A stretch of 63,583 nucleotides of DNA, the filler included, from Octopus bimaculoides (taxonomy: Eukaryota), in the NCBI RefSeq assembly GCF_001194135.2. It is 7 parts of 6 records of this genome, joined end to end, with 100 filler letters (N's around TTAATTAATTAA, not from the genome) between each part and the next. Parts side by side here need not be neighbours in the genome. Positions count along the whole stretch, not along the records: positions 29,295 to 56,229 come from NC_068983.1; 6 more parts are not named here. One strand, written 5' to 3'. This document shows, in pieces, positions 31,324 to 56,329 of the stretch. The notes beneath the pieces were generated by a model. The model ran no database searches. It saw nothing but the letters and a program-made list of their open reading frames with translations, and was not told the DNA's origin. Made by a program: the position numbers and the translations under genes. The stretch's first letter is position 1, and each line of letters begins with the position of its first letter.

Positions 31324-31955
31324 GGATCTAGTTCAAAACGGGGGCACTAGTATTTTCTTAACGAAACACTAACGAAACACTTTGAAACTTGGGAAACTGG
31401 TAGAATGTGTCATATAAAACATCTTTTACTCTTAGTCTTCTTAACAAAAAAAACGTACATCGCAAGTTATTCCATGTTAAAGTTGTCGTATTTCTGTAAT
31501 TTCAACCAATCACTGACGTCTATTCAGCTGAATAGAGTTACTGTTGGGCGGTCATAAAAATGTTATTTCCTGTGACATATTTCATCCGGTTTAATCCTAA
31601 TTTATACGCATATATTGTTTATATAATAAATTACGCTGTGTGTATCTATGTGTGTAACAATTTTAGAGTTCGGATTCTAGAGTTAGGGTTAACAGTCTAG
31701 TTAGGGTTAGAGTTAGGGGATTAATACGATATACACCGTTACAGCGCTAACTGTTTTCAACTGAATAGACGTCAGTGATTAGTAGAAATTATCGAAATAA
31801 GACAATTTTTTACATGAAATAAATTCGAATACAAAAATTTTTTTCTGTTCTATAACACAAAATAGATAAGTATACGAAGTTTGAAAGTCTTTCGGTACCA
31901 AAAACACTACATAAAACATAAATGAAAACTGGTGCCCCCGTTTTGAACAAGATCC
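31324..31955. mobile_element. Non-autonomous foldback/MITE with 8-bp target-site duplication (MULE-like)
   Basis: Termini are ggatctagttcaaaacgggggcactagt and actggtgcccccgttttgaacaagatcc. CAACTACC flanks both ends (31316-31323 and 31956-31963). An inner inverted pair lies at about 31490-31545 and 31740-31805. Confidence 0.85.
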
Positions 31956-32109
31956 CAACTACCAGTAAGCTTTCGTAAATTCTTCATCTCTGTGGACCAC
32001 AATGAACTGATAGTAATATACTTTATAGTGGACAACGATAAACCTAATCAGCAGGTTGAATTATCTTCTGTGTATTTTTTTTATCTGCAAAACTGCTACT
32101 GACGTTAAC

Positions 32110-35900: not shown

Positions 35901-38806
35901 AGAACATGATCAATGCTTTATTTTAGTGTAAGCTAATTTGTTGTTCACAATGAGAGACTCTATCCATATATGTATGTGTGTGTGTGTGTGTGTCCCACCA
36001 CCGCTTGACCACCGGTGTTGGTATGTTTATGTTCCAATAACTTAGCAGTTCGGCAAAAAAGTCCGATAGTATAAGTACTGGGGTCGATTCTTCAAGGTGA
36101 TGCTGCAGCATGGACGCAGTCAAATGATTGAAACAAGTAAGTGATAAAAGTATTTAAGGTAGTTGAATGTTGTCTGAAGGAGATTTGACTATTGTCTTAA
36201 ACAAGAAAATAACATTGGATAATATAGTCTTACAAATTCTTAAGAGAAGGAATGGCCACACCAGGAATGTCTTTGATCCGATGTCTGCTGGATCGGGGCC
36301 ATCATTTAACACAACACTACAAACAATAATAATAACAAATCAGAAGGTTTCAGGCTTGAATCAATTTTATTGATTCTCTTATAGATTTATAAAATTCCTT
36401 TTCTGTGGCCCACTTTTTTCCTCAATTTTATCAATTCCCTTATCGATTTATAATATTTCTTTTCTTCCTGCTAACCTCTCTTTCTATTCCCTGGTTATTT
36501 TCCCTCGATTTCTTCCAACTGTCTCTTTTGAATAGTTACTTCATGAGTAGTTTTGAAGATAGAAAATTGCTTCAGAAATATGGTGGCTATAACCGCCGTA
36601 AAAGCAATCTGTTTAGGAGCCATAACCATTCTGGAAACTACCAGAACAAAATGTTTTTTTTAGTATTTACTCAGGCTTGAATCCTGTTAGATTCCATTTT
36701 ACCTTTCTTGCTTTCTATGAAGCTGCTTCCAGTGTGTGAACATAAGATATCTTTGGCATTATGGATGTTATTATAGTGGCAAGCTAGCAGAATCATTGGT
36801 ACGCCCGGCAAAATACCGACAAAATGTCACAAAATAGTGACATTTTGTCTGTCTTTAAGTTCTGACTTCAATTTCCACTGTAGTCAACCTTGCTTTTCAT
36901 CTTTTTTGAGTCAATAAAATAAATATTAGTCGAACATCGGGGTCAATGTAATCAAATTACCCCTTCCTTCAAAATTGCTGGCCTTGTGCCAAAATTTGAA
37001 ATCAATATTATTAGAAACACCAGAGCTTTGCCTAAAAATTGATTATAAAACCATTTTCTTAACACAGCTGTTGCAACTGTTTTCCTTTGAAAATGCATAT
37101 TTTGAATAAAAACTGTGTTATATGATCAATATCTTAAGTAAATTTGAATTGATTTTACTAGCTCAGCATTACTTACATTTATTTGTCAAATTCCGTCATT
37201 AACAATCTGTTGTCTGTTTTTACGAGAGTATTTGCCTTCTGCAAGTTTGTAGGTGTTTTCTTTTTAGGCCAACAAACAAAACATCTCTCAGGCTGCTCAA
37301 TCTCTATAATAGGGGTGTCAGTATATTTCTATTATACTTATTTACATCAAGTCGATTAGGCCCACTACAGAGATAACAGCATTGAAGGACATAAAGGCCA
37401 ATGCCTAGCTACGAATCGACGGCTTCTTTTGGTAGATTTACTTTATTGACTCAGCAAATTGCATCACATGAATATTCAGAAAAAGACATTTATAAAATTT
37501 CAGACGTCAAAGCAAGCTCTTCATAGGTCAATATAGATCAGAAGTTTATAATTCTACCCTTGCACCCTAGAAAGGATATTAATGGTCTATGTGCTAAATT
37601 TCTCCCAGAAATTTTTCGAGCCTAGATAGTTTTTACACAGCAAGAATCAGTAATTGTTCATGTTCAAATACAAAATGTGAAATCTTAAGTTGAGGCACTG
37701 TTGAACAATTTCTACAGACAAAAATCAACAGTTTTCTCTGTTTACAACCTTGTAAAATTTAATGTCAAATTTTATCAGACTACTTTATATCTTATTCAAC
37801 TGCCATATATTTCCATTATGGAACAACAGAAGTGTCTAAGACAATGAGAATCTGTTTTCTTTTGATAATATTGATATCTGAACCAGAAAAACATTTCATG
37901 TCTGTTCTCAGAACTTTTTCTTTTATTCCCATCAGTGTCACAGAGAAAGGAACGAACATTTTTGTGGATTGTTTTCGACTAATTCTGGTAAGAACTATCT
38001 TCAGTGAAGAAACTATTCCATGAAAGACTCAGAAATGTTTTTTTTCCTCTTCTTTTGCCAACAAGAATCTCACGTCTAAAATGTCAATATATATATATAT
38101 GTACACACACACACATATACATACACACACATACATAGATATATATATACATATAAATTTGACATAGGTGATTCTTCTTGTCTTGGGATTCACAGTTAAA
38201 CGGCTGGGTGGAATTGTGCGAAAAATTACACATGTGTAGAATGATCCGGTGGTGATGCTGGGCTTTGTATTTTTTTCAAAGATCCCATGGTTACCGAAAT
38301 AATCTACTATAATAATACTCTTGTGTTTATGAATGAGAAAGGAAGGGGTGATAGATGAATAAAGAAGGAAGGGGTGATGTCATACTTGGTAGNNNNNNNN
38401 NNGGGTGATAGATGAATAAAGAAGGAAGGGGTGATGTCATACTTGGTAGTGTATGCTGAAAAAAATAAATCAAACAGTGTTTCAACTCTGTGTGAATATA
38501 TGTGTGTGTATATAAAAGTGGGGTATGTTAATGTGTGCGTGCGTGCATGTGCATACACAATAGAAGTGGGATGGTTTATCTTTGTTCGCTTAGTATTTGG
38601 GTTTACTTTTTGATTTGGTTGAATCTTCGTTGTTGTTTTTTTCTTTTTGTTAGTCAGTTATTATTAGCGTTTTGACAGAAAAAAGTCATTCTAAAATTGT
38701 TTTTTGATGTAAGCGTGCCCAAAGAAGTCGAATGCTTACACAGACCAGGTTTTACAGTCACATCATCCAAACCGACCAGATGAAACCAGGCTTAGCTGCT
38801 AGTATA

Positions 38807-38886: not shown

Positions 38887-39109
38887 GATGATGATGATGA
38901 TGATGATATGATATGAACTGGTAGGATGTATTCTGATATTAGATATTTCATCACAACCCAAAGATATGTCATAAGAGTAACCAGGTGTGGCTCTCTAGTA
39001 AGAAGTTTGCTTCCCAACCACATGGCTCTGGGTTCAGTCTCATGTGGTATATTGGGCAAGTGCCTTCTATTATAGCCTTGGGTCAGCCAAAGCCTGCTGT
39101 ATATATATA

Positions 39110-39454
39110 TCATCATCAGCATCATCGTTTAACGTCCGCTTTCCATGCTAGCATGGGTTGGACGATTTGACTGAGGACTGGTGAAGCCGGATGGCAACAC
39201 CAGGCTCCAATCTAATTTGGCAGAGTTTCTACAGCTGGATGCCCTTCCTAACGCCAACCACTCAGAGAGTGTAGTGGGTGCTTTTACGTGTCACCCGCAC
39301 GAAGGCCAGTCAGGCAGTACTGGCAACGGCCACGCTCGAAATGGTGTCTTTTATGTGCCACCCGCACAAAAGCCAGTCCAGGGGCACTGGCAACGATCTC
39401 GCTCGAAAACCCTACGAAGGCCAGTCAGGCGGCACTGGCAACGATCTCACTTCG
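39110..39454 (-). mobile_element. SINE family D (RTE-related 3' end, (GAT)n tail); second copy at 42030-42330
   Basis: catcatcatcgtttaacgtcc…ggatgcccttcctaacgcc…gccagtc..ggcactggcaacg is shared by both copies and has internal subrepeats. Confidence 0.8.
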
Positions 39455-39883
39455 NNNNNNNNNNNNNNNNNNNNNNNNNNNNNNNNNNNNNNNNNNNNNN
39501 NNNNNNNNNNNNNNNNNNNNNNNNNNNNNNNNNNNNNNNNNNNNNNNNNNNNNNNNNNNNNNNNNNNNNNNNNNNNNNNNNNNNNNNNNNNNNNNNNNNN
39601 NNNNNNNNNNNNNNNNNNNNNNNNNNNNNNNNNNNNNNNNNNNNNNNNNNNNNNNNNNNNNNNNNNNNNNNNNNNNNNNNNNNNNNNNNNNNNNNNNNNN
39701 NNNNNNNNNNNNNNNNNNNNNNNNNNNNNNNNNNNNNNNNNNNNNNNNNNNNNNNNNNNNNNNNNNNNNNNNAGGTTCAGTCCCATAGTGTGGCAACTTG
39801 GTCACATGTTTTCTACTATATCTTTGACCCTACCAAAGCCTTGTGAGTAGATTTAGTCGATGGAAACTGAAGGAAACCTGCCT

Positions 39884-39960
<77 letters not shown>

Positions 39961-40257
39961 GTTTGTCCACCAACATCGCTTGATAACTGGTAGTGGTTTG
40001 CTTACGATAGGCTTCTTTCAGTTTCCATCTACCAAATCTATAAGGCTGTTAGTTGGCTTGAGGCTAGAACAGAAGACACTTGTCCAAGGTGGCATGGAGT
40101 AGGATTGAACCTGGAACTATGTGGTTGGGAAGCAAGCTTGTTACCGTATAGTTATACCTGCACCTACATTATAAACATACATACATGTAAATAGATATAG
40201 AAAGCAACATACACACACACACACACACACAAACCAAATTATATTGAAATCCCTTGC

Positions 40258-40613
40258 CTCACGAAGGTCAACAGTGTATTCGGTCTGGTCAGTTTCTGAT
40301 ACAACACTGTGCACAAGACTCGTATTGTTCCCCATAAGGATAACATCAGGCGTTCCTTCGACCATTTCCCCATCATCGTAGGTGTCAAACTCAACAGAAT
40401 ACTTCAACTGCCCTCCATACGATATGATCTTGTTGCTGAGGTAGGTGTACGGGGCAGACCAATAAAGGGGCTTCTTTTCGTCTTCAACCAGGTTGATAAT
40501 GGCAGAGATCTCAGATGACCCTTCTTCAATAATAGCGTCGACGGTGTTGGGTAGTGTCCAGTTCTTCATGTCGGATATTGTGTACCATGTGAGAGAAGAG
40601 TGTTCACAACTGG
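40258..40613 (-). CDS. LanA: Laminin alpha L4 (laminin B / domain IVa) coding block
   Basis: Reads CEHSSLTWYTISDMKNW...LYWSAPYTYLSNKIISYGGQLKYSV...PDVILMGN...YTVDLRE, a typical L4 domain (YW.AP..YL.N...SYGG.L.Y). Probable end at a GAG|gcaagg donor. Confidence 0.9.
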
Positions 40614-41095
40614 NNNNNNNNNNNNNNNNNNNNNNNNNNNNNNNNNNNNNNNNNNNNNNNNNNNNNNNNNNNNNNNNNNNNNNNNNNNNNNNNNNNNNNN
40701 NNNNNNNNNNNNNNNNNNNNNNNNNNNNNNNNNNNNNNNNNNNNNNNNNNNNNNNNNNNNNNNNNNNNNNNNNNNNNNNNNNNNNNNNNNNNNNNNNNNN
40801 NNNNNNNNNNNNNNNNNNNNNNNNNNNNNNNNNNNNNNNNNNNNNNNNNNNNNNNNNNNNNNNNNNNNNNNNNNNNNNNNNNNNNNNNNNNNNNNNNNNN
40901 NNNNNNNNNNNNNNNNNNNNNNNNNNNNNNNNNNNNNNNNNNNNNNNNNNNNNNNNNNNNNNNNNNNNNNNNNNNNNNNNNNNNNNNNNNNNNNNNNNNN
41001 NNNNNNNNNNNNNNNNNNNNNNNNNNNNNNNNNNNNNNNNNNNNNNNNNNNNNNNNNNNNNNNNNNNNNNNNNNNNNNNNNNNNNNNNNNNNNNN

Positions 41096-41908: not shown

Positions 41909-42962
41909 TATGGTTAAGGTTCCTACTTCAATGTAGAACTAAACAAAAAAGGCAGAAATTACTAGAGCCATTGCAATATTTATTTATAAAATCTAGTGAT
42001 GTGGAAACATCAAAATGAACCATGAAGATCATCATCATCATCATCATCGTTTAACGTCCACTTTCCATGCTAGCATGGGTTGGACGATTTGACTGAGGAC
42101 TGGTGAACCGGATGGCTGCACCAGGCTCCAGTCTGACCTGGCAGAGTTTTTACAGCTGGATGCCCTTCCTAACGCCAACCACTTTGAGAGTGTAGTGGGT
42201 GCTTTTATGTGCCACCGGCACGAAGGCCAGTCACATGGTACTGGCAACGGCCATGCTCAAAATGGTGTTTTTTCCGTGCCACCTGCACAGGAGCCAGTCC
42301 AGCGGCACTGGCAACGACCTCGCTCAAATAATTTTCTGTTGATTCTATTCCAAACACTGCATCACATCACTGCAATGTTGCACCAACAATGTAGCAAGTA
42401 CAGCACTGCACCAGGCTACTCTGTTAGAATCCAAAATATTCCAATCAATACCCTAGAATGGCATGGTATAATGGATTACCTTTGAAATATCAAACATATA
42501 AGCCAAAATGGATGACTAATTTTGCTATACCCTTGGATATGAATAAAAAATTTCACAGTTAAAAACATCAACAGGAATATCTCAATTTACTGAGTTTTAA
42601 AGCTCTACTTGTTGTGTGAAAGAATAGTTTACATAGACGTGGCTGTGTGGTAAGAAGTTTGCTTCCCAGTCACATGGTTCCTGGGTTCAAGCTCTTTGCG
42701 TGGCACCTTAGGTAAGAGTCTTCTATTATAGCCTTATGTCAACCTTGAGAGTAGCTTTGGTAGACGGAAACTGAAAGAAGCCCATCATATATTCTTTTAT
42801 TTGTTTCAGTCATTTGACTACGGTCATGCTGGAGTACCGATTTTAGTCGCACAAGTTGGCCCCAGGACTTATTCTATTGGTCGTTTTTGCCAAACCACTA
42901 AGTTACGGGGATGTAAACACACCAACATTGGTTGTCAAGCGATGGTGGGGAGACACACACCC

Positions 42963-43030: not shown

Positions 43031-46000
43031 AAGTTACAATAGGATACAGGCAGCGATGTCTCGATAATCAATACAGATACATGGAAAAAAATCGAGAGAC
43101 CTAGATTAAAAAAAACTTTGAAAACTGCCCATAGCGTTTCAGGAAGAAAATTATATTTCAAGGGCAAATTGATAAGTAACATTACATTTCGTGAAAAAAC
43201 CTTAAAAGCTAAAGTTTTTGTGTTAAATAATACCACAAATTTATTCAGTACTGATAGGATGGAATTATTTAATTTATGGGACCTCGCCATAAAACTTTTC
43301 TGCAAAAATGTGAATGGTTTTTTATCTCCAGTATAGATAATTCATCAATCGAATTGAAAAAAAAAAAAAAATTTAAAGATTTTTCCTGAAGTTCTGTCTG
43401 ATAAATTAGGCCTGTGCACCAAAACGAAGGCAAAGTTTGAAATAAAGGAAAATGCCATACTGACATTTATACAAAGACGAACTGTACCGTTCATAGCATT
43501 AGAACAGATTAACTTAGAGAGACTAGAAAAAATTGGAGTTATCCAAAAAGTGGAATATAGTCAATGGATATCACCAACTGTGTACATTAAGATAAAAGAA
43601 CAATAAAATCAGAATGTAAGCTGATTTTTCCACTGGCTTAAATGAATGTCTTAAAATGTTCCAGTATCTGCTACCTATTCCGGAGGATATTTTTGAGGAA
43701 TTGAACGGTGGCAAATTATTTTTTAAATTGGATCTCTGTGACGCGTACCTACAAATTAGAGTAGACAATGAATGCTTTAAATATCTAACAATTAACATAT
43801 ATGAATGACTGTATAAATACAGCAGGTTACCATGTCGTTTAAAATTCGCACCAGCGATTTTTCAACAGATTATGGATGCAATGTTAGCGGACTCTGAATT
43901 CAAAATTCCATATCTGGATGATATACACATTAAAAGCAAATCCAGGCATCAACACGTAGAACATGTAAAATATGTTTTCGAAAAAATTAACGATTACAGC
44001 TTTACTTAGAGTGAAAAAAAATGTATTTTTCTTACCAAAAATAAGATATTTAGGACAAATCATTGACAGAAATGGACGTCGACCAGACCCATCGAGGGTA
44101 GACACAATTAAAAATATGTCCCCTCCATCAAACATAACGACCTTACAAGCATTTTTAGGATTGGCAAATTATTACCAAAATTGTATTCCAAATATGCATA
44201 AGGTGAGGGTTCCACTGAATAATATGCCAAAGTGGAATTGGTTGGAAAATTGTTAAAAGGCGTTTGATGAAATTAAAAAGAATATAAACATCTGATTTGT
44301 CGTTAGCAAACTTCTATCCTGCAAAGATGACTGATGTAGCTTCAGACGCTTCTGAGTACGATATAGGACCAGGAATGCTACATAAATATGAAGATGGTAA
44401 CATGAAGGCAGTGGTTCATGCCTTACATTGTCTGATATCAGCAGAGAAAAATTATAGTCAAATCGAGAAAGAAGCTCTAGCGATTATTTTTGCCATCAAA
44501 AAATTTCACAGATTTTTACAAAGTAGAAAGTTTCGTCTAGAGACTGATCATCATCTGTTATTATCGACATTTGGGTTAAAGAAAGGAATCCCTACCCATA
44601 CTGCTAATAGTTTGCAACACAGGGGTATGATATTATTCAACTATGATTTCAAGATGGAGTATATACCATCCAAGGAATTAGGATTGTCTAACAAGGCTGA
44701 TTTCAAAAAATGCAGAACCATTTGAAGATACTGTGATTGCTGCCATGTTGTGTGTAACATCATTCATGAACTGCCAGTTACTTTATTAGACAAAATTAAA
44801 ATCGGAAAACGATAAATTCATTATAAAAATGAAAGAAATGCCGAAGGCTGAAAGAGTTAAAAATATGCGTAACACAAATACGAACCCATTCTCAATGTAT
44901 GACAATGTATTGATATGCGCACAAAGAGTTGTAGTACCAGCCACACTACAAAAGCGATTATTAAAGGAATTTTATATGGGTCACCCAGGGATTTCGAGAA
45001 TGTAATCAGTAATGAGACGTTATGTATATTGACCAACAATGGACTGCGACATTGAAGAATCAGCTGAAGCATGCAGAATGTGTGCCTTAGCTGCAAAAGC
45101 ATCTTCCGTTAAATGGCAACCATGGCTAAAAACAGATATTCCATGGTTTAGACTGTATGTTAATTATGTCGGTCCACTTAAGAGTGCATATTAACTGGTT
45201 GTGGTGGAGAGTTTTTCAAAGTGGTCAGAAGTTCATAACTGTAAAAAAAACGATATCTGCAGTTACAGTAAGCTTTTTACATGAATTGCTCACCAGGTGT
45301 GGTATTCTTGATATCATTGTGTCAGATAACAGAACTCAATTTATGTCAGATGAGTTCAGAAAATTTTGTTTTGTCATGAAACATGTCACCACTCCGCCCT
45401 ATCATTTTAGATCAAATAGACAAGCGGAACGTTTTGTTGACACTCACACTTCAGCAATTTCTAAGAGTATACCATGTAACAGCTAATCCTAATCCCCCGT
45501 CCAGAATGTCACCCGCAGAACTGATGTTTGCTAGAAAGATCAGATCTGTCTTTGATAAGCTGATACCCAGTGAAAATAGAAATGAGGCAAACTACAAAAA
45601 AACTTCAAAATTCTTCAAGTTAGGTGACAAAGTTTTATTTTAAAACCTATAGATATGGTAAAGAATGCTGGGGGGACGGTGTAGTTATTAAACCAATTGG
45701 AAGAATGTTATTCCTGGTAAAAGGAAAAATATTGAACATAAAAAAACATATTAACCAAGTTAAAAAAAGATTTACAGGGGAAAAAAAAACAGTCACGAGA
45801 AATGGAAGTATTGTACAATGTGTTTGGGGTACCAACACCCAAACAATTTGAAACTACATGTTCTAGCACCAGAAAATGGGAAAGAAAGGAAACACTAGAA
45901 TTGGGCCCCAAGTGTAAGAGATATTAAAACTAGGAGCAGAGTTCAATTCTCAAAAGGGGAGAAGTGAGGGAAGACTAATTCTAAAAAGAGGAGATGTTGT

Positions 46001-50061: not shown

Positions 50062-50215
50062 GGCGTTGCTGTGTGATAAGAAGCTTGCTTCTAAACCACA
50101 TGGTTCCAGGTTCAGTCCCACTGCATAACACCTTGGGCAAGTGTCTTCTACAATAGCCTAGGGCCGACCAAAGCCTTGTGAGAGGATTTGGTAGACGGAA
50201 ACTGGAAAAACCCGT

Positions 50216-52620: not shown

Positions 52621-54585
52621 TCTTTTACTTGTTTCAGTCATTTTGACTGNNNNNNNNNNNNNNNNNNNNNNNNNNNNNNNNNNNNNNNNNNNNNNNNNNN
52701 NNNNNNNNNNNNNNNNNNNNNNNNNNNNNNNNNNNNNNNNNNNNNNNNNNNNNNNNNNNNNNNNNNNNNNNNNNNNNNNNNNNNNNNNNNNNNNNNNNNN
52801 NNNNNNNNNNNNNNNNNNNNNNNNNNNNNNNNNNNNNNNNNNNNNNNNNNNNNNNNNNNNNNNNNNNNNNNNNNNNNNNNNNNNNNNNNNNNNNNNNNNN
52901 NNNNNNNNNNNNNNNNNNNNNNNNNNNNNNNNNNNNNNNNNNNNNNNNNNNNNNNNNNNNNNNNNNNNNNNNNNNNNNNNNNNNNNNNNNNNNNNNNNNN
53001 NNNNNNNNNNNNNNNNNNNNNNNNNNNNNNNNNNNNNNNNNNNNNNNNNNNNNNNNNNNNNNNNNNNNNNNNNNNNNNNNNNNNNNNNNNNNNNNNNNNN
53101 NNNNNNNNNNNNNNNNNNNNNNNNNNNNNNNNNNNNNNNNNNNNNNNNNNNNNNNNNNNNNNNNNNNNNNNNNNNNNNNNNNNNNNNNNNNNNNNNNNNN
53201 NNNNNNNNNNNNNNNNNNNNNNNNNNNNNNNNNNNNNNNNACATCTATTTGACTGTTTTTTGTTTTGTTTTGGTGACGAGGCACTAAGCTAGATCCTGAA
53301 AATTATGTGGCGGGGAAAAAACGGATCTTGTGAACTTTCTCACCCCTTCGGAAAAACATTTTCCCCACAAATTTCTTTATAATTGTAATCTATGCTGTTT
53401 GAAAGGTGTTTCTGTAAAATTTCATTGAAAGATATCCATTTTCTTGAAAGTTATGATGGGAAGAAAACAGATTGCGTGAATTTTCCGACAGTCCTCTCTC
53501 CACCCCTTCGGAAAGCATCCCCCACCCCCCAGAAATTTCTTTATAGTCATATTTTGTGCCATTTGAACAGTATTTCTATAAAATTTCACTAATACAACTA
53601 GTAGGTTGGTTTTTCTTTTTTCTTTGTTATCAGGTCTCAAACTGTATATTGACCTAATTTTCTTGATCGACCAAATTGATTTTTCCTTTCTCTGAAGTTA
53701 TGTTCCTGCAGGTAGTCATATTGATGGGTAGGCGTATTGAATAAATTTAATTCGATTTGCTTGAAAATCTTTGTTCGTAAACTGTTTAGCATAGATGAGA
53801 GAGAGAGAGAGAGAAGCGGAGTTAAAGAAAGTGGAGGGGAACCCATTTAAAACTGTTCAACGACAATTTTAATTCCAAAGTGATTGTTCTGGACTTTCCC
53901 TCGAAAATCACATTTAAGAGTATTTTGGGACGAATTGGCCAGCGACGAATTGACCAGGGAAAATTAATCGTCGACGAAATAACCAGGGAAGAATTGTCCT
54001 TGCACCATGAGCACAATGTGTGTGTGTGTGTGGGTATTCAGTGTAGATAGAACATTCACCAATAAACATACGTCTTCATTACTCTGAAGGATTATAAAAC
54101 AATCTCAGAACTGTCCTGTAGAGAACGTTGAGAAAAAGAGCTTAAAATTCAATATTGGAGTAAGACAACCCTACTGCAGCACCTATGACAACAAAAAACA
54201 AAATTCTTTAAGGACTTTCTGCACATCTGTACCTAGAAGAAAAAGAAGAAAGTCACCCATTGCGACAATAAAGACAACAATACTAAAGGTAATCTTTCTG
54301 AGAAACTATATCGAGACTTAAATTCCGTGAAAAATTTGAGAATTTCTGTGAAAAAGTTTTCCTTAACTTTTTCCCAGTTCAATTGCTTATTTATATGAAT
54401 TTTTGTTGTGTATGCATGTGTGTTACCAGTAAGACTTCCCCGCCCCCATTTTCTCCCGAATTTGTTTATTCTAAACATTTTTTTTGCCCCAAACCCCCGT
54501 TTTCGGATACAGAGGTTCCAAAAAATTACCAAAAATCGGCATTGTTACCCCCCACCCAATTCTTCAATTTTGATTTTCCCCAACA

Positions 54586-54648
54586 CTAACCCTAATCCTA
54601 ACCTTAAAACTCTAACCCTAACCCTAAAACCCTAACCGTAACCATAAC
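54586..54648. repeat. Degenerate (CCCTAA)n telomere-like tract; an opposite-strand tract lies at about 31660-31720
   Basis: ctaaccctaatcctaaccttaaaactctaaccctaaccctaaaaccctaaccgtaaccataac. Confidence 0.8.
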
Positions 54649-54839
54649 TACAGAAATGTTTTGAAATTTTTGTCCGAATCATAATGTCCGCATTTTCCTA
54701 CATATTTAGAAAAAAAATAGAAATAATACATTTCTAAATCTCTCAGAGAGATTTATGCAGTAGTGATGCAATAAAGTAGTTGTATGCTGTCAACTTAATG
54801 TGACAATCCCATGAAGGGAATAATACTACTGCTATTTAA

Positions 54840-55081
54840 CCCTAAGAAGCAGCACCGCTGCCTGTCGGCCTTGACACATTTCCTGTGTCCATATGTTGAC
54901 AAGGGGGAGACAAGCACCTCCAGACTGATGACAAGCTACTCCAGACTGATGACGAGCAAAGACTCAGAAACATGTCTCTGGATGCAGGCTTAGCTGGGTG
55001 GAGGTGCTTGTCTCCCCCTTGTAAACATAAGGACACAGGAAATGTGTCAAGGCCGACAGGAAGCGGTGCTGCTTCCTAGGG
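54840..55081. mobile_element. piggyBac-like MITE or foldback element containing the hammerhead
   Basis: Ends read TTAA|CCCTAAG and CTAGGG|CTAA. The inverted arms 54832-54922 and 54999-55089 are 86/91 complementary with no indels. Confidence 0.55.
54940..54982 (+). ncRNA. Minimal type I hammerhead ribozyme candidate at a hairpin apex
   Basis: TCCAGA (stem I) CTGATGA c GAG caaaga CTC a GAAAC AT GT C TCTGGA (stem I'). The core is intact, stem I is a perfect 6 bp, stem III is the palindrome ACATGT, the triplet is GUC (cut after 54976), and C-A replaces a pair at the base of stem II. Confidence 0.7.
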
Positions 55082-55085
55082 CTAA

Positions 55086-55202
55086 ATAGACTAAGAGTAA
55101 AAGACGTTTTATATGACACATTCTACCAGTGTCCCAAGTTTCAAAGTGTTTCGTTAGTGTTTTGTTAAGAAAATACTGGTGCCCCCGTTTTGAACTAGAT
55201 CC
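55086..55202. mobile_element. Isolated terminal arm of the same family as 31324-31955
   Basis: It is the reverse complement of 31324-31440 (…gtttcaaagtgtttcgttagtg…gcccccgttttgaactagatcc). Confidence 0.85.
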
Positions 55203-55350
55203 AAAAATGCCGATTTTTGCCAATATTTTTGCAGATTCGTATTCCCCGTAGCCGATAAGGGGGGTTTGTGGTGGAAAAAAAAAATTTAAGGGTGGGTTTT
55301 TTGGGGGGCGGGCGGAAGTCTTGCTGTGTTACTGTATGTATGTGTATACG

Positions 55351-55389
<39 letters not shown>

Positions 55390-56229
55390 TTTTTAACACA
55401 TATATACATGCATATAAACTCCGTATAGTAAAGTCGAAACAGAATGTCTCTCCTCGTATGTAATTATCGTTATTATTTGTAAAAGACCAACACAGGTAAA
55501 GCCTGGACAGTAATAAAGTCTTCTGTTGAATATTCACAGGTGTTGTCAGTTACATCTTCGTGCGGCCTCAGAAATACATTTTCATTCACCAATTCAGCTA
55601 GTCATCACCTCACAAGCTAAAAAATAACACAACAAACCCGCAAGCGACATGTTCATATAACAATTATAGTTAAGGCATCCACTTCCACAATGGCGTCTCA
55701 GACTTTGCAGTTCATCCGCATTGACAGCTGAACTCAAGCAACAAGCATACCATGCAACAACAATGTCAACGATTTTTCACGAGATGGCAATGTTTCCTTT
55801 ATTCGCCATGTTACTCAAAAAACATGTTTTCCTAGATTTTATGGCTGCTTTCTATATTCAATTATTTGACCAATTTTTAAGATACTTCCATTGCTCTCCA
55901 ACTTAGGAGGAATTTCAACCATGTTTCATGGTCTGCTACCACAACAGCTCCTTTATAGGATCCAGTTAGCTCAAGACATCATCAGGAGGAACCACGTCCG
56001 GTTTCGACCCCTACTCCTCTACCGTTTTGACGTGGCGGGGCCCCTCCTTTCGGAGGTGTCTTCAGCTCTGGTGTTGGGTGCATGTCTTCTTTCACTGTTT
56101 GTGACTGTTCTAATTCAACTGTGGAATGTCCTTCGCTATGGTTATTTTCCAGGAGGTTCTGGCCACACGTCTTACGGTTCATCAACCCGCGTTGTTGAAT
56201 TACTTTCTTCTGACATACCTTCCCTTGGT

Positions 56230-56329
56230 NNNNNNNNNNNNNNNNNNNNNNNNNNNNNNNNNNNNNNNNNNNNTTAATTAATTAANNNNNNNNNNNNNNN
56301 NNNNNNNNNNNNNNNNNNNNNNNNNNNNN
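56230..56329. other. Artificial scaffold spacer
   Basis: Same 44/12/44 layout. Confidence 0.97.

Follow-up and report, generated by a model that had tools for sequence, protein, structure and literature searches.

A type I hammerhead motif at the apex of a long hairpin with piggyBac-like ends in the genome of Octopus bimaculoides

The hairpin element

The window analyzed here is a stretch of 63,583 nucleotides (nt), filler included, joined from records of the Octopus bimaculoides genome (NCBI RefSeq assembly GCF_001194135.2), and the element under study, a hairpin-forming sequence that carries a hammerhead ribozyme motif in its centre, lies at 54832-55089 of this window. It belongs to the piece that comes from NC_068983.1 (positions 29295-56229, 27 kb), to which all in-piece searches reported below refer and which is AT-rich (~35% GC) and contains N gaps. 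The locus consists of two inverted arms of 91 nt (54832-54922 and 54999-55089) separated by a centre of 76 nt. As had been claimed in a preliminary description of this DNA, the arms are complementary at 86 of the 91 positions (95%) according to a repeat finder; the five differences between them comprise 2 transitions and 3 transversions. The element is small (250-258 nt) and non-coding, and its GC content of 52% compares with 36-40% in the flanking kilobases. Transcribed from the + strand, the 258 nt fold into a single long hairpin of -182.3 kcal/mol (z = -21.6). The same strand of the centre holds all parts of a type I hammerhead (54940-54982), and the analysis confirmed that centre and arms together make up a hairpin with the hammerhead at its apex. 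The coordinates of the features are collected in Table 1.

The symmetry of the arms seems to reside in the DNA and not in the RNA. The RNA of the - strand also forms one long hairpin, of -193 kcal/mol, and so folds better than that of the + strand; in addition, some of the mismatches between the arms are A·C in the + (ribozyme) RNA and G·U in the - strand. Both the A·C mismatches in the ribozyme strand and the better fold of the opposite strand argue for an inverted repeat of DNA and not for an RNA rod under selection. Nothing in the sequence points to RNA-level selection on the arms, whose near-identity would reflect symmetry at the DNA level.

Table 1. Features of the hairpin element and of its hammerhead (positions along the window)
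Feature	Position	Strand	Description
TTAA, putative left target-site duplication	54836-54839	.	adjoins left arm
Left arm, putative terminal inverted repeat	54840-54922	+	starts CCCTAAGAAGCAGC; inverted-repeat call
21-nt tandem duplication	54909-54959	+	GACAAGC-NN-CTCCAGACTGAT; 2.4 units (Tandem Repeats Finder)
Whole hammerhead domain	54933-54991	+	closing stem AAGC/GCUU, internal loop 1, helices I-III, core
Internal loop 1	within 54933-54991	+	UAC on 5' side, UGCA on 3' side
Helix I, 5' strand UCCAGA	54940-54945	+	pairs with 54977-54982; six Watson-Crick pairs
Core C3-A9, CUGAUGA	54946-54952	+	conserved core sequence
Helix II	54953-54966	+	C54953·A54966 mismatch at 10.1/11.1, then GAG/CUC (3 bp); loop 2 CAAAGA
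G12-A13-A14	54967-54969	+	GAA
Helix III	A54970-U54975	+	encloses CAUG; ACAUGU is a 6-nt palindrome
C17	54976	+	predicted cleavage between 54976 and 54977
Helix I, 3' strand UCUGGA	54977-54982	+	partner of 54940-54945
Right arm, putative terminal inverted repeat	54999-55081	-	reverse complement starts CCCTAGGAAGCAGC
CTAA, putative right copy of TTAA	55082-55085	.	one transition relative to TTAA

The hammerhead at the apex

Written out by its parts, the hammerhead of the window reads AAGC-UAC-UCCAGA-CUGAUGA-CGAG-CAAAGA-CUCA-GAAAC-AU-GUC-UCUGGA-UGCA-GGCUU. It holds every base of the type I core (C3, U4, G5, A6, N7, G8 and A9, G12, A13 and A14, the A15.1-U16.1 pair and H17), three helices surround this core, helix I is open-ended, and the pairing of helix I is retained when the whole element is folded to its energy minimum. 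Helix III consists of 1 bp and a tetraloop or, formally, of 2 bp. The cut is predicted after 54976, as had been proposed earlier, since the hammerhead numbering places C17 at C54976. The preliminary description had spoken of a minimal type I ribozyme; the assignment to type I stands, but only helix III is minimal, since internal loop 1, a closing stem and loop 2 are all present. It had also considered the long stem as originally continuous with stem I. This is unlikely, because the asymmetric right spacer corresponds to the internal loop 1 and the closing stem of the ribozyme itself and not to a decayed perfect arm.

The architecture is close to that of N79, a ribozyme engineered from Schistosoma Sm1, which reads GCAGG-UAC-AUCCAG-CUGAUGA-GUCC-CAAAUA-GGAC-GAAAC-(helix III)-GUC-CUGGAU-UCCA-CUGC (PMC12550524). 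Sm-alpha (Sm1)/N79 and the octopus motif have in common the type I topology, a 6-bp helix I built on UCCAG/CUGGA and a closing stem; with N79 the octopus motif further shares the UAC that forms the 5' strand of internal loop 1 and the U-N-CA of the opposite strand (UCCA in N79, UGCA in the octopus element), the CUGAUGA and GAAAC cores, a helix II of four positions and a loop 2 of 6 nt (CAAAUA in N79, CAAAGA in octopus). They differ in the sequence of helix II, which opens with C·A in octopus and with G-C in N79, in helix I, which is shifted by one pair in the octopus element, and in helix III, which is far longer in N79, where it was extended by engineering. The carrier differs as well, that of Sm-alpha being a retroelement resembling short interspersed nuclear elements (SINE-like) and that of the octopus motif an inverted-repeat hairpin. 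As judged from the comparison of the loops and from the N79 model described below, the likeness to an experimentally active metazoan hammerhead includes the elements of loops 1 and 2 involved in tertiary contacts.

Canonical type I hammerheads of metazoans have been described as having a helix I of 6 bp, a helix II of 4 bp, interacting loops and a helix III of 1-2 bp closed by a small loop of palindromic sequence, whereas in the minimal hammerheads of the Penelope type helix II is long, helix I is short and loop 1 is poorly defined (PMC4209133). The octopus hammerhead fits the first of these descriptions. A weak or absent helix III, a proposed dimeric action and the animal-retroelement setting are shared with the minimal hammerheads of Penelope-like elements (PMC4209133); the helix I of 6 bp, the defined loop 1 and the helix II of four positions set it apart from them. 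Nor does the locus have the organization of a Penelope pseudo-long terminal repeat, in which a minimal hammerhead lies beside an open reading frame (ORF) with reverse transcriptase (RT) and GIY-YIG domains: the loops are canonical, and no such domain is present in the scanned ORFs. Judged from its sequence, the ribozyme belongs with the canonical type I hammerheads of metazoans, those of the Sm1/retrozyme kind, and not with the minimal ones of the Penelope type.

Very probably the motif is a genuine hammerhead, related to the others by descent. A relaxed type I descriptor matched once in the piece, exactly at this site, compared with 0.001 matches per shuffle over 2000 dinucleotide-preserving shuffles. 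A covariance model built from N79 only, into which no information from the window entered, was run over both strands of the piece with filters off and ranked 54935-54994 first, with 23.9 bits, an E value of ~3e-4 by a rough calibration and all 76 model positions aligned; the second-best match in the piece reached 10 bits. Similarity in those parts that are not dictated by catalysis, that is, the loops and helix I, is the more telling for ribozyme ancestry. Folded alone, the ribozyme domain gave z = -1.0. A near-random folding energy is expected of a hammerhead core.

The Rfam models speak on the other side. A check with Hammerhead_1 had been suggested in the preliminary description, and it came out negative: neither this model nor those of HH9, HH10, type II and type III produced a match at the gathering score over the 27 kb, nor at E<=10 in 361 nt or in 76 nt. 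This miss is attributed to the C·A mismatch, the shift of helix I by one pair and the tiny helix III. The motif might instead have arisen by chance in the loop of an ordinary miniature inverted-repeat transposable element (MITE), or represent a doubled CUGAUGA/CUGA similar to that of C/D-box small nucleolar RNAs (snoRNAs), with no ribozyme ancestry; consistent with this are the absence of matches to the Rfam hammerhead families at every threshold used, the break in the most conserved pair of helix II and the fact that the weak Rfam matches obtained (10-17 bits) are all to C/D-box small RNAs. Such an origin is nevertheless extremely improbable in view of the descriptor expectation of 0.001 per 27 kb, the resemblance of the peripheral loops and helix I to Sm1/N79 and the E value of the N79-only model. 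A C/D-box snoRNA proper was rejected as a candidate, as the scores mentioned compare with gathering scores of 35-54 bits and no D box lies beside a terminal stem; the weak C/D-box matches are ascribed to the doubled CUGAUGA/CUGA.

Termini of the element

The ends of the element read TTAA-CCC at 54836-54842 and GGG-CTAA at 55079-55085, exactly as had been noted before. In a longer stretch, the left end is CTAT-TTAA-CCCTAAGAAGCAGC and the right end, as its reverse complement, CTAT-TTAG-CCCTAGGAAGCAGC. These ends, TTAACCCTAAGAAGCAG and TTAGCCCTAGGAAGCAG, can be compared with the termini of piggyBac, ttaaCCCTAGAAAGATA (PMC3078864). The match is close, TTAA-CCCTA(A/G)GAAG in the element (the shared motif can also be spelled CCCTA(A/G)GAAGCAGCACC) against TTAA-CCCTAGAAAG in piggyBac: over the first 14 nt, TTAA included, each arm agrees with the ttaaCCCTAGAAAG of piggyBac at 12 of 14 positions, a figure that rises to 13 of 14 when the better base is taken at each position. 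Both inverted repeats start with CCC in a CCCTAG-like sequence, CCCTAAGAAGCAG and CCCTAGGAAGCAG as against CCCTAGAAAGATA in piggyBac. These piggyBac-like termini constitute the strongest argument, as far as can be judged from the sequence, for regarding the arms as the inverted repeats of a DNA transposon and not as an RNA rod.

Activity of the ribozyme in this copy

The pair 10.1-11.1, normally G-C, is the most conserved pair of hammerheads after 15.1-16.1, and U·U is the mismatch best tolerated at this position (Perreault 2011, PMC3088659). In the octopus element the pair is not of the Watson-Crick type, being formed by C54953 and A54966. A single change, C54953>U or A54966>G, would restore it. 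Since A54966 is preceded by C54965, it is plausible that A54966 arose by CpG>CpA decay (G>A) from an ancestral C-G pair.

Helix III may impose a further limit. In HHR_Amex1 of newt and axolotl, helix III is likewise formed by one pair and a palindromic tetraloop, and the monomer cleaves to ~6% within an hour while the dimer does so efficiently (PMC7229834). By analogy, a helix III made of one A-U pair and a palindromic CAUG suggests that efficient cutting would require two copies paired through ACAUGU, in line with the dimer-dependent cleavage anticipated in the preliminary description. The element contains only one complete hammerhead, and when two copies were folded together the extended helix III was not clearly recovered.

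The earlier observation of a partial duplicate of stem I and the core, with a period of 21 nt, was reproduced by Tandem Repeats Finder (Table 1). The duplication leaves an orphan second copy of the helix I 5' strand and CUGAUGA at 54919-54931, and its units are bordered by the direct repeats GACAAGCA, GACAAGCT and GACGAGCA, 21 nt apart. Replication slippage leaves unit borders of this sort and may have generated it. Judging by its sequence, the orphan strand could pair with the 3' strand of helix I in competition with the proper 5' strand. The C·A mismatch at 10.1/11.1, this competing strand and the weak helix III together with the presence of only one complete hammerhead indicate that the ribozyme of this copy is probably weak or dead.

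Origin of the element

The reading tentatively preferred here, possible though far from established, is that the element represents a decaying single copy of a piggyBac-type MITE that carries a retrozyme-type hammerhead in its centre. It would be a short non-coding DNA element with a TTAA target, CCCTA(A/G)GAAG ends and terminal inverted repeats of ~83 bp flanking the 76-bp centre, and the hammerhead, of the kind present in Schistosoma Sm-alpha and in animal retrozymes, may have been captured from a retrozyme-like sequence. With piggyBac MITEs the element shares the TTAA on the left, the CCCTA(A/G)GAAG start, the small size, the lack of coding capacity and the hairpin fold; it differs from them in its very long arms, in the CTAA that replaces TTAA on the right and in the self-cleaving ribozyme motif of its centre. 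In a paralogous repeat of the same piece (31324-31443), the point that corresponds to the hairpin reads GTTAAGAAGACT, and the hairpin locus reads G-CTAA-ATAGACT; by itself this would be suggestive of an insertion at a TTAA, but the left flanks are unrelated.

A number of observations weigh against this proposal. The target-site duplication is imperfect, with TTAA on the left and CTAA on the right, and the inverted repeat extends for 4 nt beyond them (CTAT/ATAG). Since TTAA is self-complementary and the palindrome reaches further, the TTAA pair is not independent proof of a duplication, and with the repeat continuing 4 nt outward the target would have been a 12-nt palindrome, CTATTTAAATAG. Inverted repeats of at least 83 bp are long for relatives of piggyBac. 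No clean empty site emerges from the comparison with the related repeat: the right flank is homologous from ~55088 onward, and the left flank has no homology to the interior of the full copy (z = -0.8). No second copy was found in the 27-kb piece with an arm 24-mer allowing 3 mismatches, an end 18-mer or BLAST at word size 7, and a single copy does not establish that the element is mobile or belongs to a family. Most canonical type I hammerheads of animals belong to retrozymes and not to DNA transposons (PMC7229834), and the literature examined, of incomplete coverage, contained no natural hammerhead associated with piggyBac, MITEs or the ends of an inverted-repeat DNA transposon.

Beyond the piece, no exact match to arm 20-24-mers or to a degenerate hammerhead 26-mer was found in viral, metagenome and prokaryotic genome collections. 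Within ~4 kb of the element, no Pfam domain, those of transposase, RT and GIY-YIG included, was detected in ten N-free ORFs of at least 60 aa (50.5-56.2 kb) or in a 128-aa ORF at 55891-56277; the scan did not take in four short ORFs of 54383-55036, of which two are internal to the element and two lie upstream (54383-54635). A 64-aa ORF across the element, as well as the Laminin_B exon described below, retrieved no protein relatives from databases that apparently lack the proteins of this species.

The main competitor, unlikely yet deserving serious consideration, is an origin from a rod-like non-LTR retrozyme. The element would then be a solo monomer, a 258-nt unit mobilized through RNA, in which the arms would be the self-paired rod of a circular RNA, the hammerhead would have evolved for multimeric transcripts and the present copy would derive, by reverse transcription, from a circle that had been opened at the far loop, the TTAA-CCC ends being coincidental or telomere-like (TAACCCTAA). 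Metazoan non-LTR retrozymes carry type I hammerheads in "highly self-paired" units of 150-450 nt with a GC content under 45% (PMC7229834). The octopus element falls within this size range and is strongly self-paired, and its canonical type I hammerhead with a dimer-type helix III is typical of retrozymes: as in newt satellite 2 and HHR_Amex1, it lies in a short unit of this kind, with a helix III of one pair and a palindromic tetraloop that implies dimeric cleavage. Eukaryotic hammerheads are also often located near telomeric sequences (PMC4209133), and a degenerate (CCCTAA)11 tract (54578-54648, 72% match) is found 190 nt upstream of the hairpin on the same strand. Against this origin, the GC content of 52% exceeds that reported for metazoan retrozymes, and the piece contains no head-to-tail tandem unit, the only internal repeat being the 21-nt duplication; the latter point is not decisive, since solo monomers are common and may account for anything from none to all units of a known family (2026 preprint). 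Also against it are the near-perfect 91-nt arms, which with their A·C/G·U mismatch pattern and the better fold of the - strand look like those of a DNA element, the close match to piggyBac at both ends, which would have to be a coincidence, and the lack of any visible direct-repeat duplication besides TTAA/CTAA.

The arms could also have arisen on the spot, by an inverted duplication that was seeded at helix I and the closing stem of a hammerhead fragment (of retrozyme, SINE or satellite origin) and proceeded by fold-back or template switching, giving a one-off, non-mobile palindrome. The single copy in the piece agrees with such an event, and so do a neighborhood crowded with rearranged MITE fragments and the structure of the inner 14 nt of the left arm (GACAAGCACCTCCA), which duplicate the helix I region of the ribozyme and have in the right arm the exact complement that is expected from reverse copying of one flank. 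But an arbitrary inverted duplication is unlikely to stop exactly at termini of the TTAA-CCCTAG type on both sides, and the symmetric outer ends and the contrast in composition with the flanks better fit an inserted unit; this explanation is regarded as improbable.

On the whole, a functional design is no more probable for the element than a mundane history, in which decay set in after a capture or a local rearrangement. The most far-reaching reading would be a multi-copy family in which the hammerhead is an integral and conserved part of a cut-and-paste hairpin mobilized by piggyBac, with read-through transcripts being processed, through tip-to-tip dimers at ACAUGU, into defined double-stranded RNAs (dsRNAs) or circular RNAs. 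The existence of such a family is doubtful; it may represent a retrozyme that switched to mobilization at the DNA level or a MITE that makes use of a ribozyme.

Possible processing and significance

If the + strand were transcribed, for example by read-through, the inverted repeats would pair and prolong helix I and the closing stem, giving a rod of ~100 bp that bears the hammerhead at its tip. Cleavage after C54976 would then convert the hairpin into a two-stranded duplex, the tip of which would carry a 2',3'-cyclic phosphate and a 5'-OH. By analogy with the newt and axolotl hammerheads, two copies would probably have to pair through ACAUGU for the cut to be efficient.

The canonical type I hammerheads of animals are currently explained as components of elements mobilized through RNA, including retrozymes, SINE-like repeats and Penelope-like elements. 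The hammerhead of this locus is real and its association with inverted-repeat ends like those of a DNA transposon is unusual, and the case rests on one imperfect copy. If the association holds, a conserved hammerhead between the inverted repeats of a DNA transposon would link self-cleaving RNAs to cut-and-paste transposons and would suggest that sequence modules have been exchanged between retrozymes and MITEs. It would also provide a natural RNA whose long, perfect hairpin is opened at the tip by its own ribozyme, which would bear on the biogenesis of dsRNA, small RNA and circular RNA and, in cephalopods, on the substrates of ADAR. Should the element be a lone decayed copy, it would simply add a further relic to the genomic hammerheads, from a phylum for which no hammerhead report was found in the literature searched; in particular, the literature on octopus and other cephalopods, of which the coverage was incomplete, yielded none.

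Genomic neighborhood

MITE-like repeats, nested in one another, surround the element. Directly to the right of the hairpin, 55088-55202 is 96.5% identical to the last 115 nt of a 635-bp MITE-like element located at 31324-31958, which is hAT-like and has inverted ends of ~27 nt, GGATCT(T/A)GTTCAAAACGGGGGCAC, and an 8-bp direct repeat, GGTAGTTG; in addition, 31925-31958 matches 55172-55205. The full copy at 31 kb contains a telomere-like tract of the ctaaccctaac type (31655-31725, - strand), and both this tract and the (CCCTAA)11 tract upstream of the hairpin have the same terminal fragment of the MITE at a distance of a few hundred bases. The only other TTAACCCTA of the piece occurs at 31684-31692 (- strand), within the telomere-like tract of the MITE at 31 kb (gactgTTAACCCTAACTCTAGAATCC), and might be a piggyBac-like end or a mere telomere-like repeat. 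A weak outer inverted repeat (54472-54546/55203-55288, 69% over ~86 nt) encloses the upstream telomere-like tract, the hairpin and the MITE fragment, and within it a second end of the CCCCCGTTTT type (54489-54518) suggests another nested MITE shell.

With respect to protein-coding sequences, an ORF fragment beside an N gap at 40141-40640 (- strand) matches Laminin B (domain IV; Pfam PF00052, E = 5e-16) and presumably belongs, as an exon, to a laminin- or perlecan-like host gene; it is found ~14 kb from the hammerhead, on the opposite strand. The broken ORFs at 43972-45486 (+ strand), with an RT-associated RNase H (PF17917, E = 3e-19) and a weak match to an integrase core, are the remnant of a Ty3/gypsy-like LTR retrotransposon, which accounts for the sole retroelement remnants seen, ~10 kb from the hairpin.

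Other repeats are scattered over the piece. Copies of a SINE-like repeat (GTGGCTGTGTGGTAAGAAG...CCTTGTGAGTGGATTTGGTAGACGGAAACTGAAAGAAGCC), in which ARAGORN called no tRNA gene, include 38987-39088, 39790-39878, 42639-42782 and 50065-50213 and are followed by TA/TG/CA microsatellites. A repeat of 221-298 bp is common to 39109-39407 and 42031-42328 (88-97%), and a 47-nt segment present with 100% identity at 38346-38392 and 38403-38449, with a spacing of 57 nt, suggests a very recent local tandem duplication.

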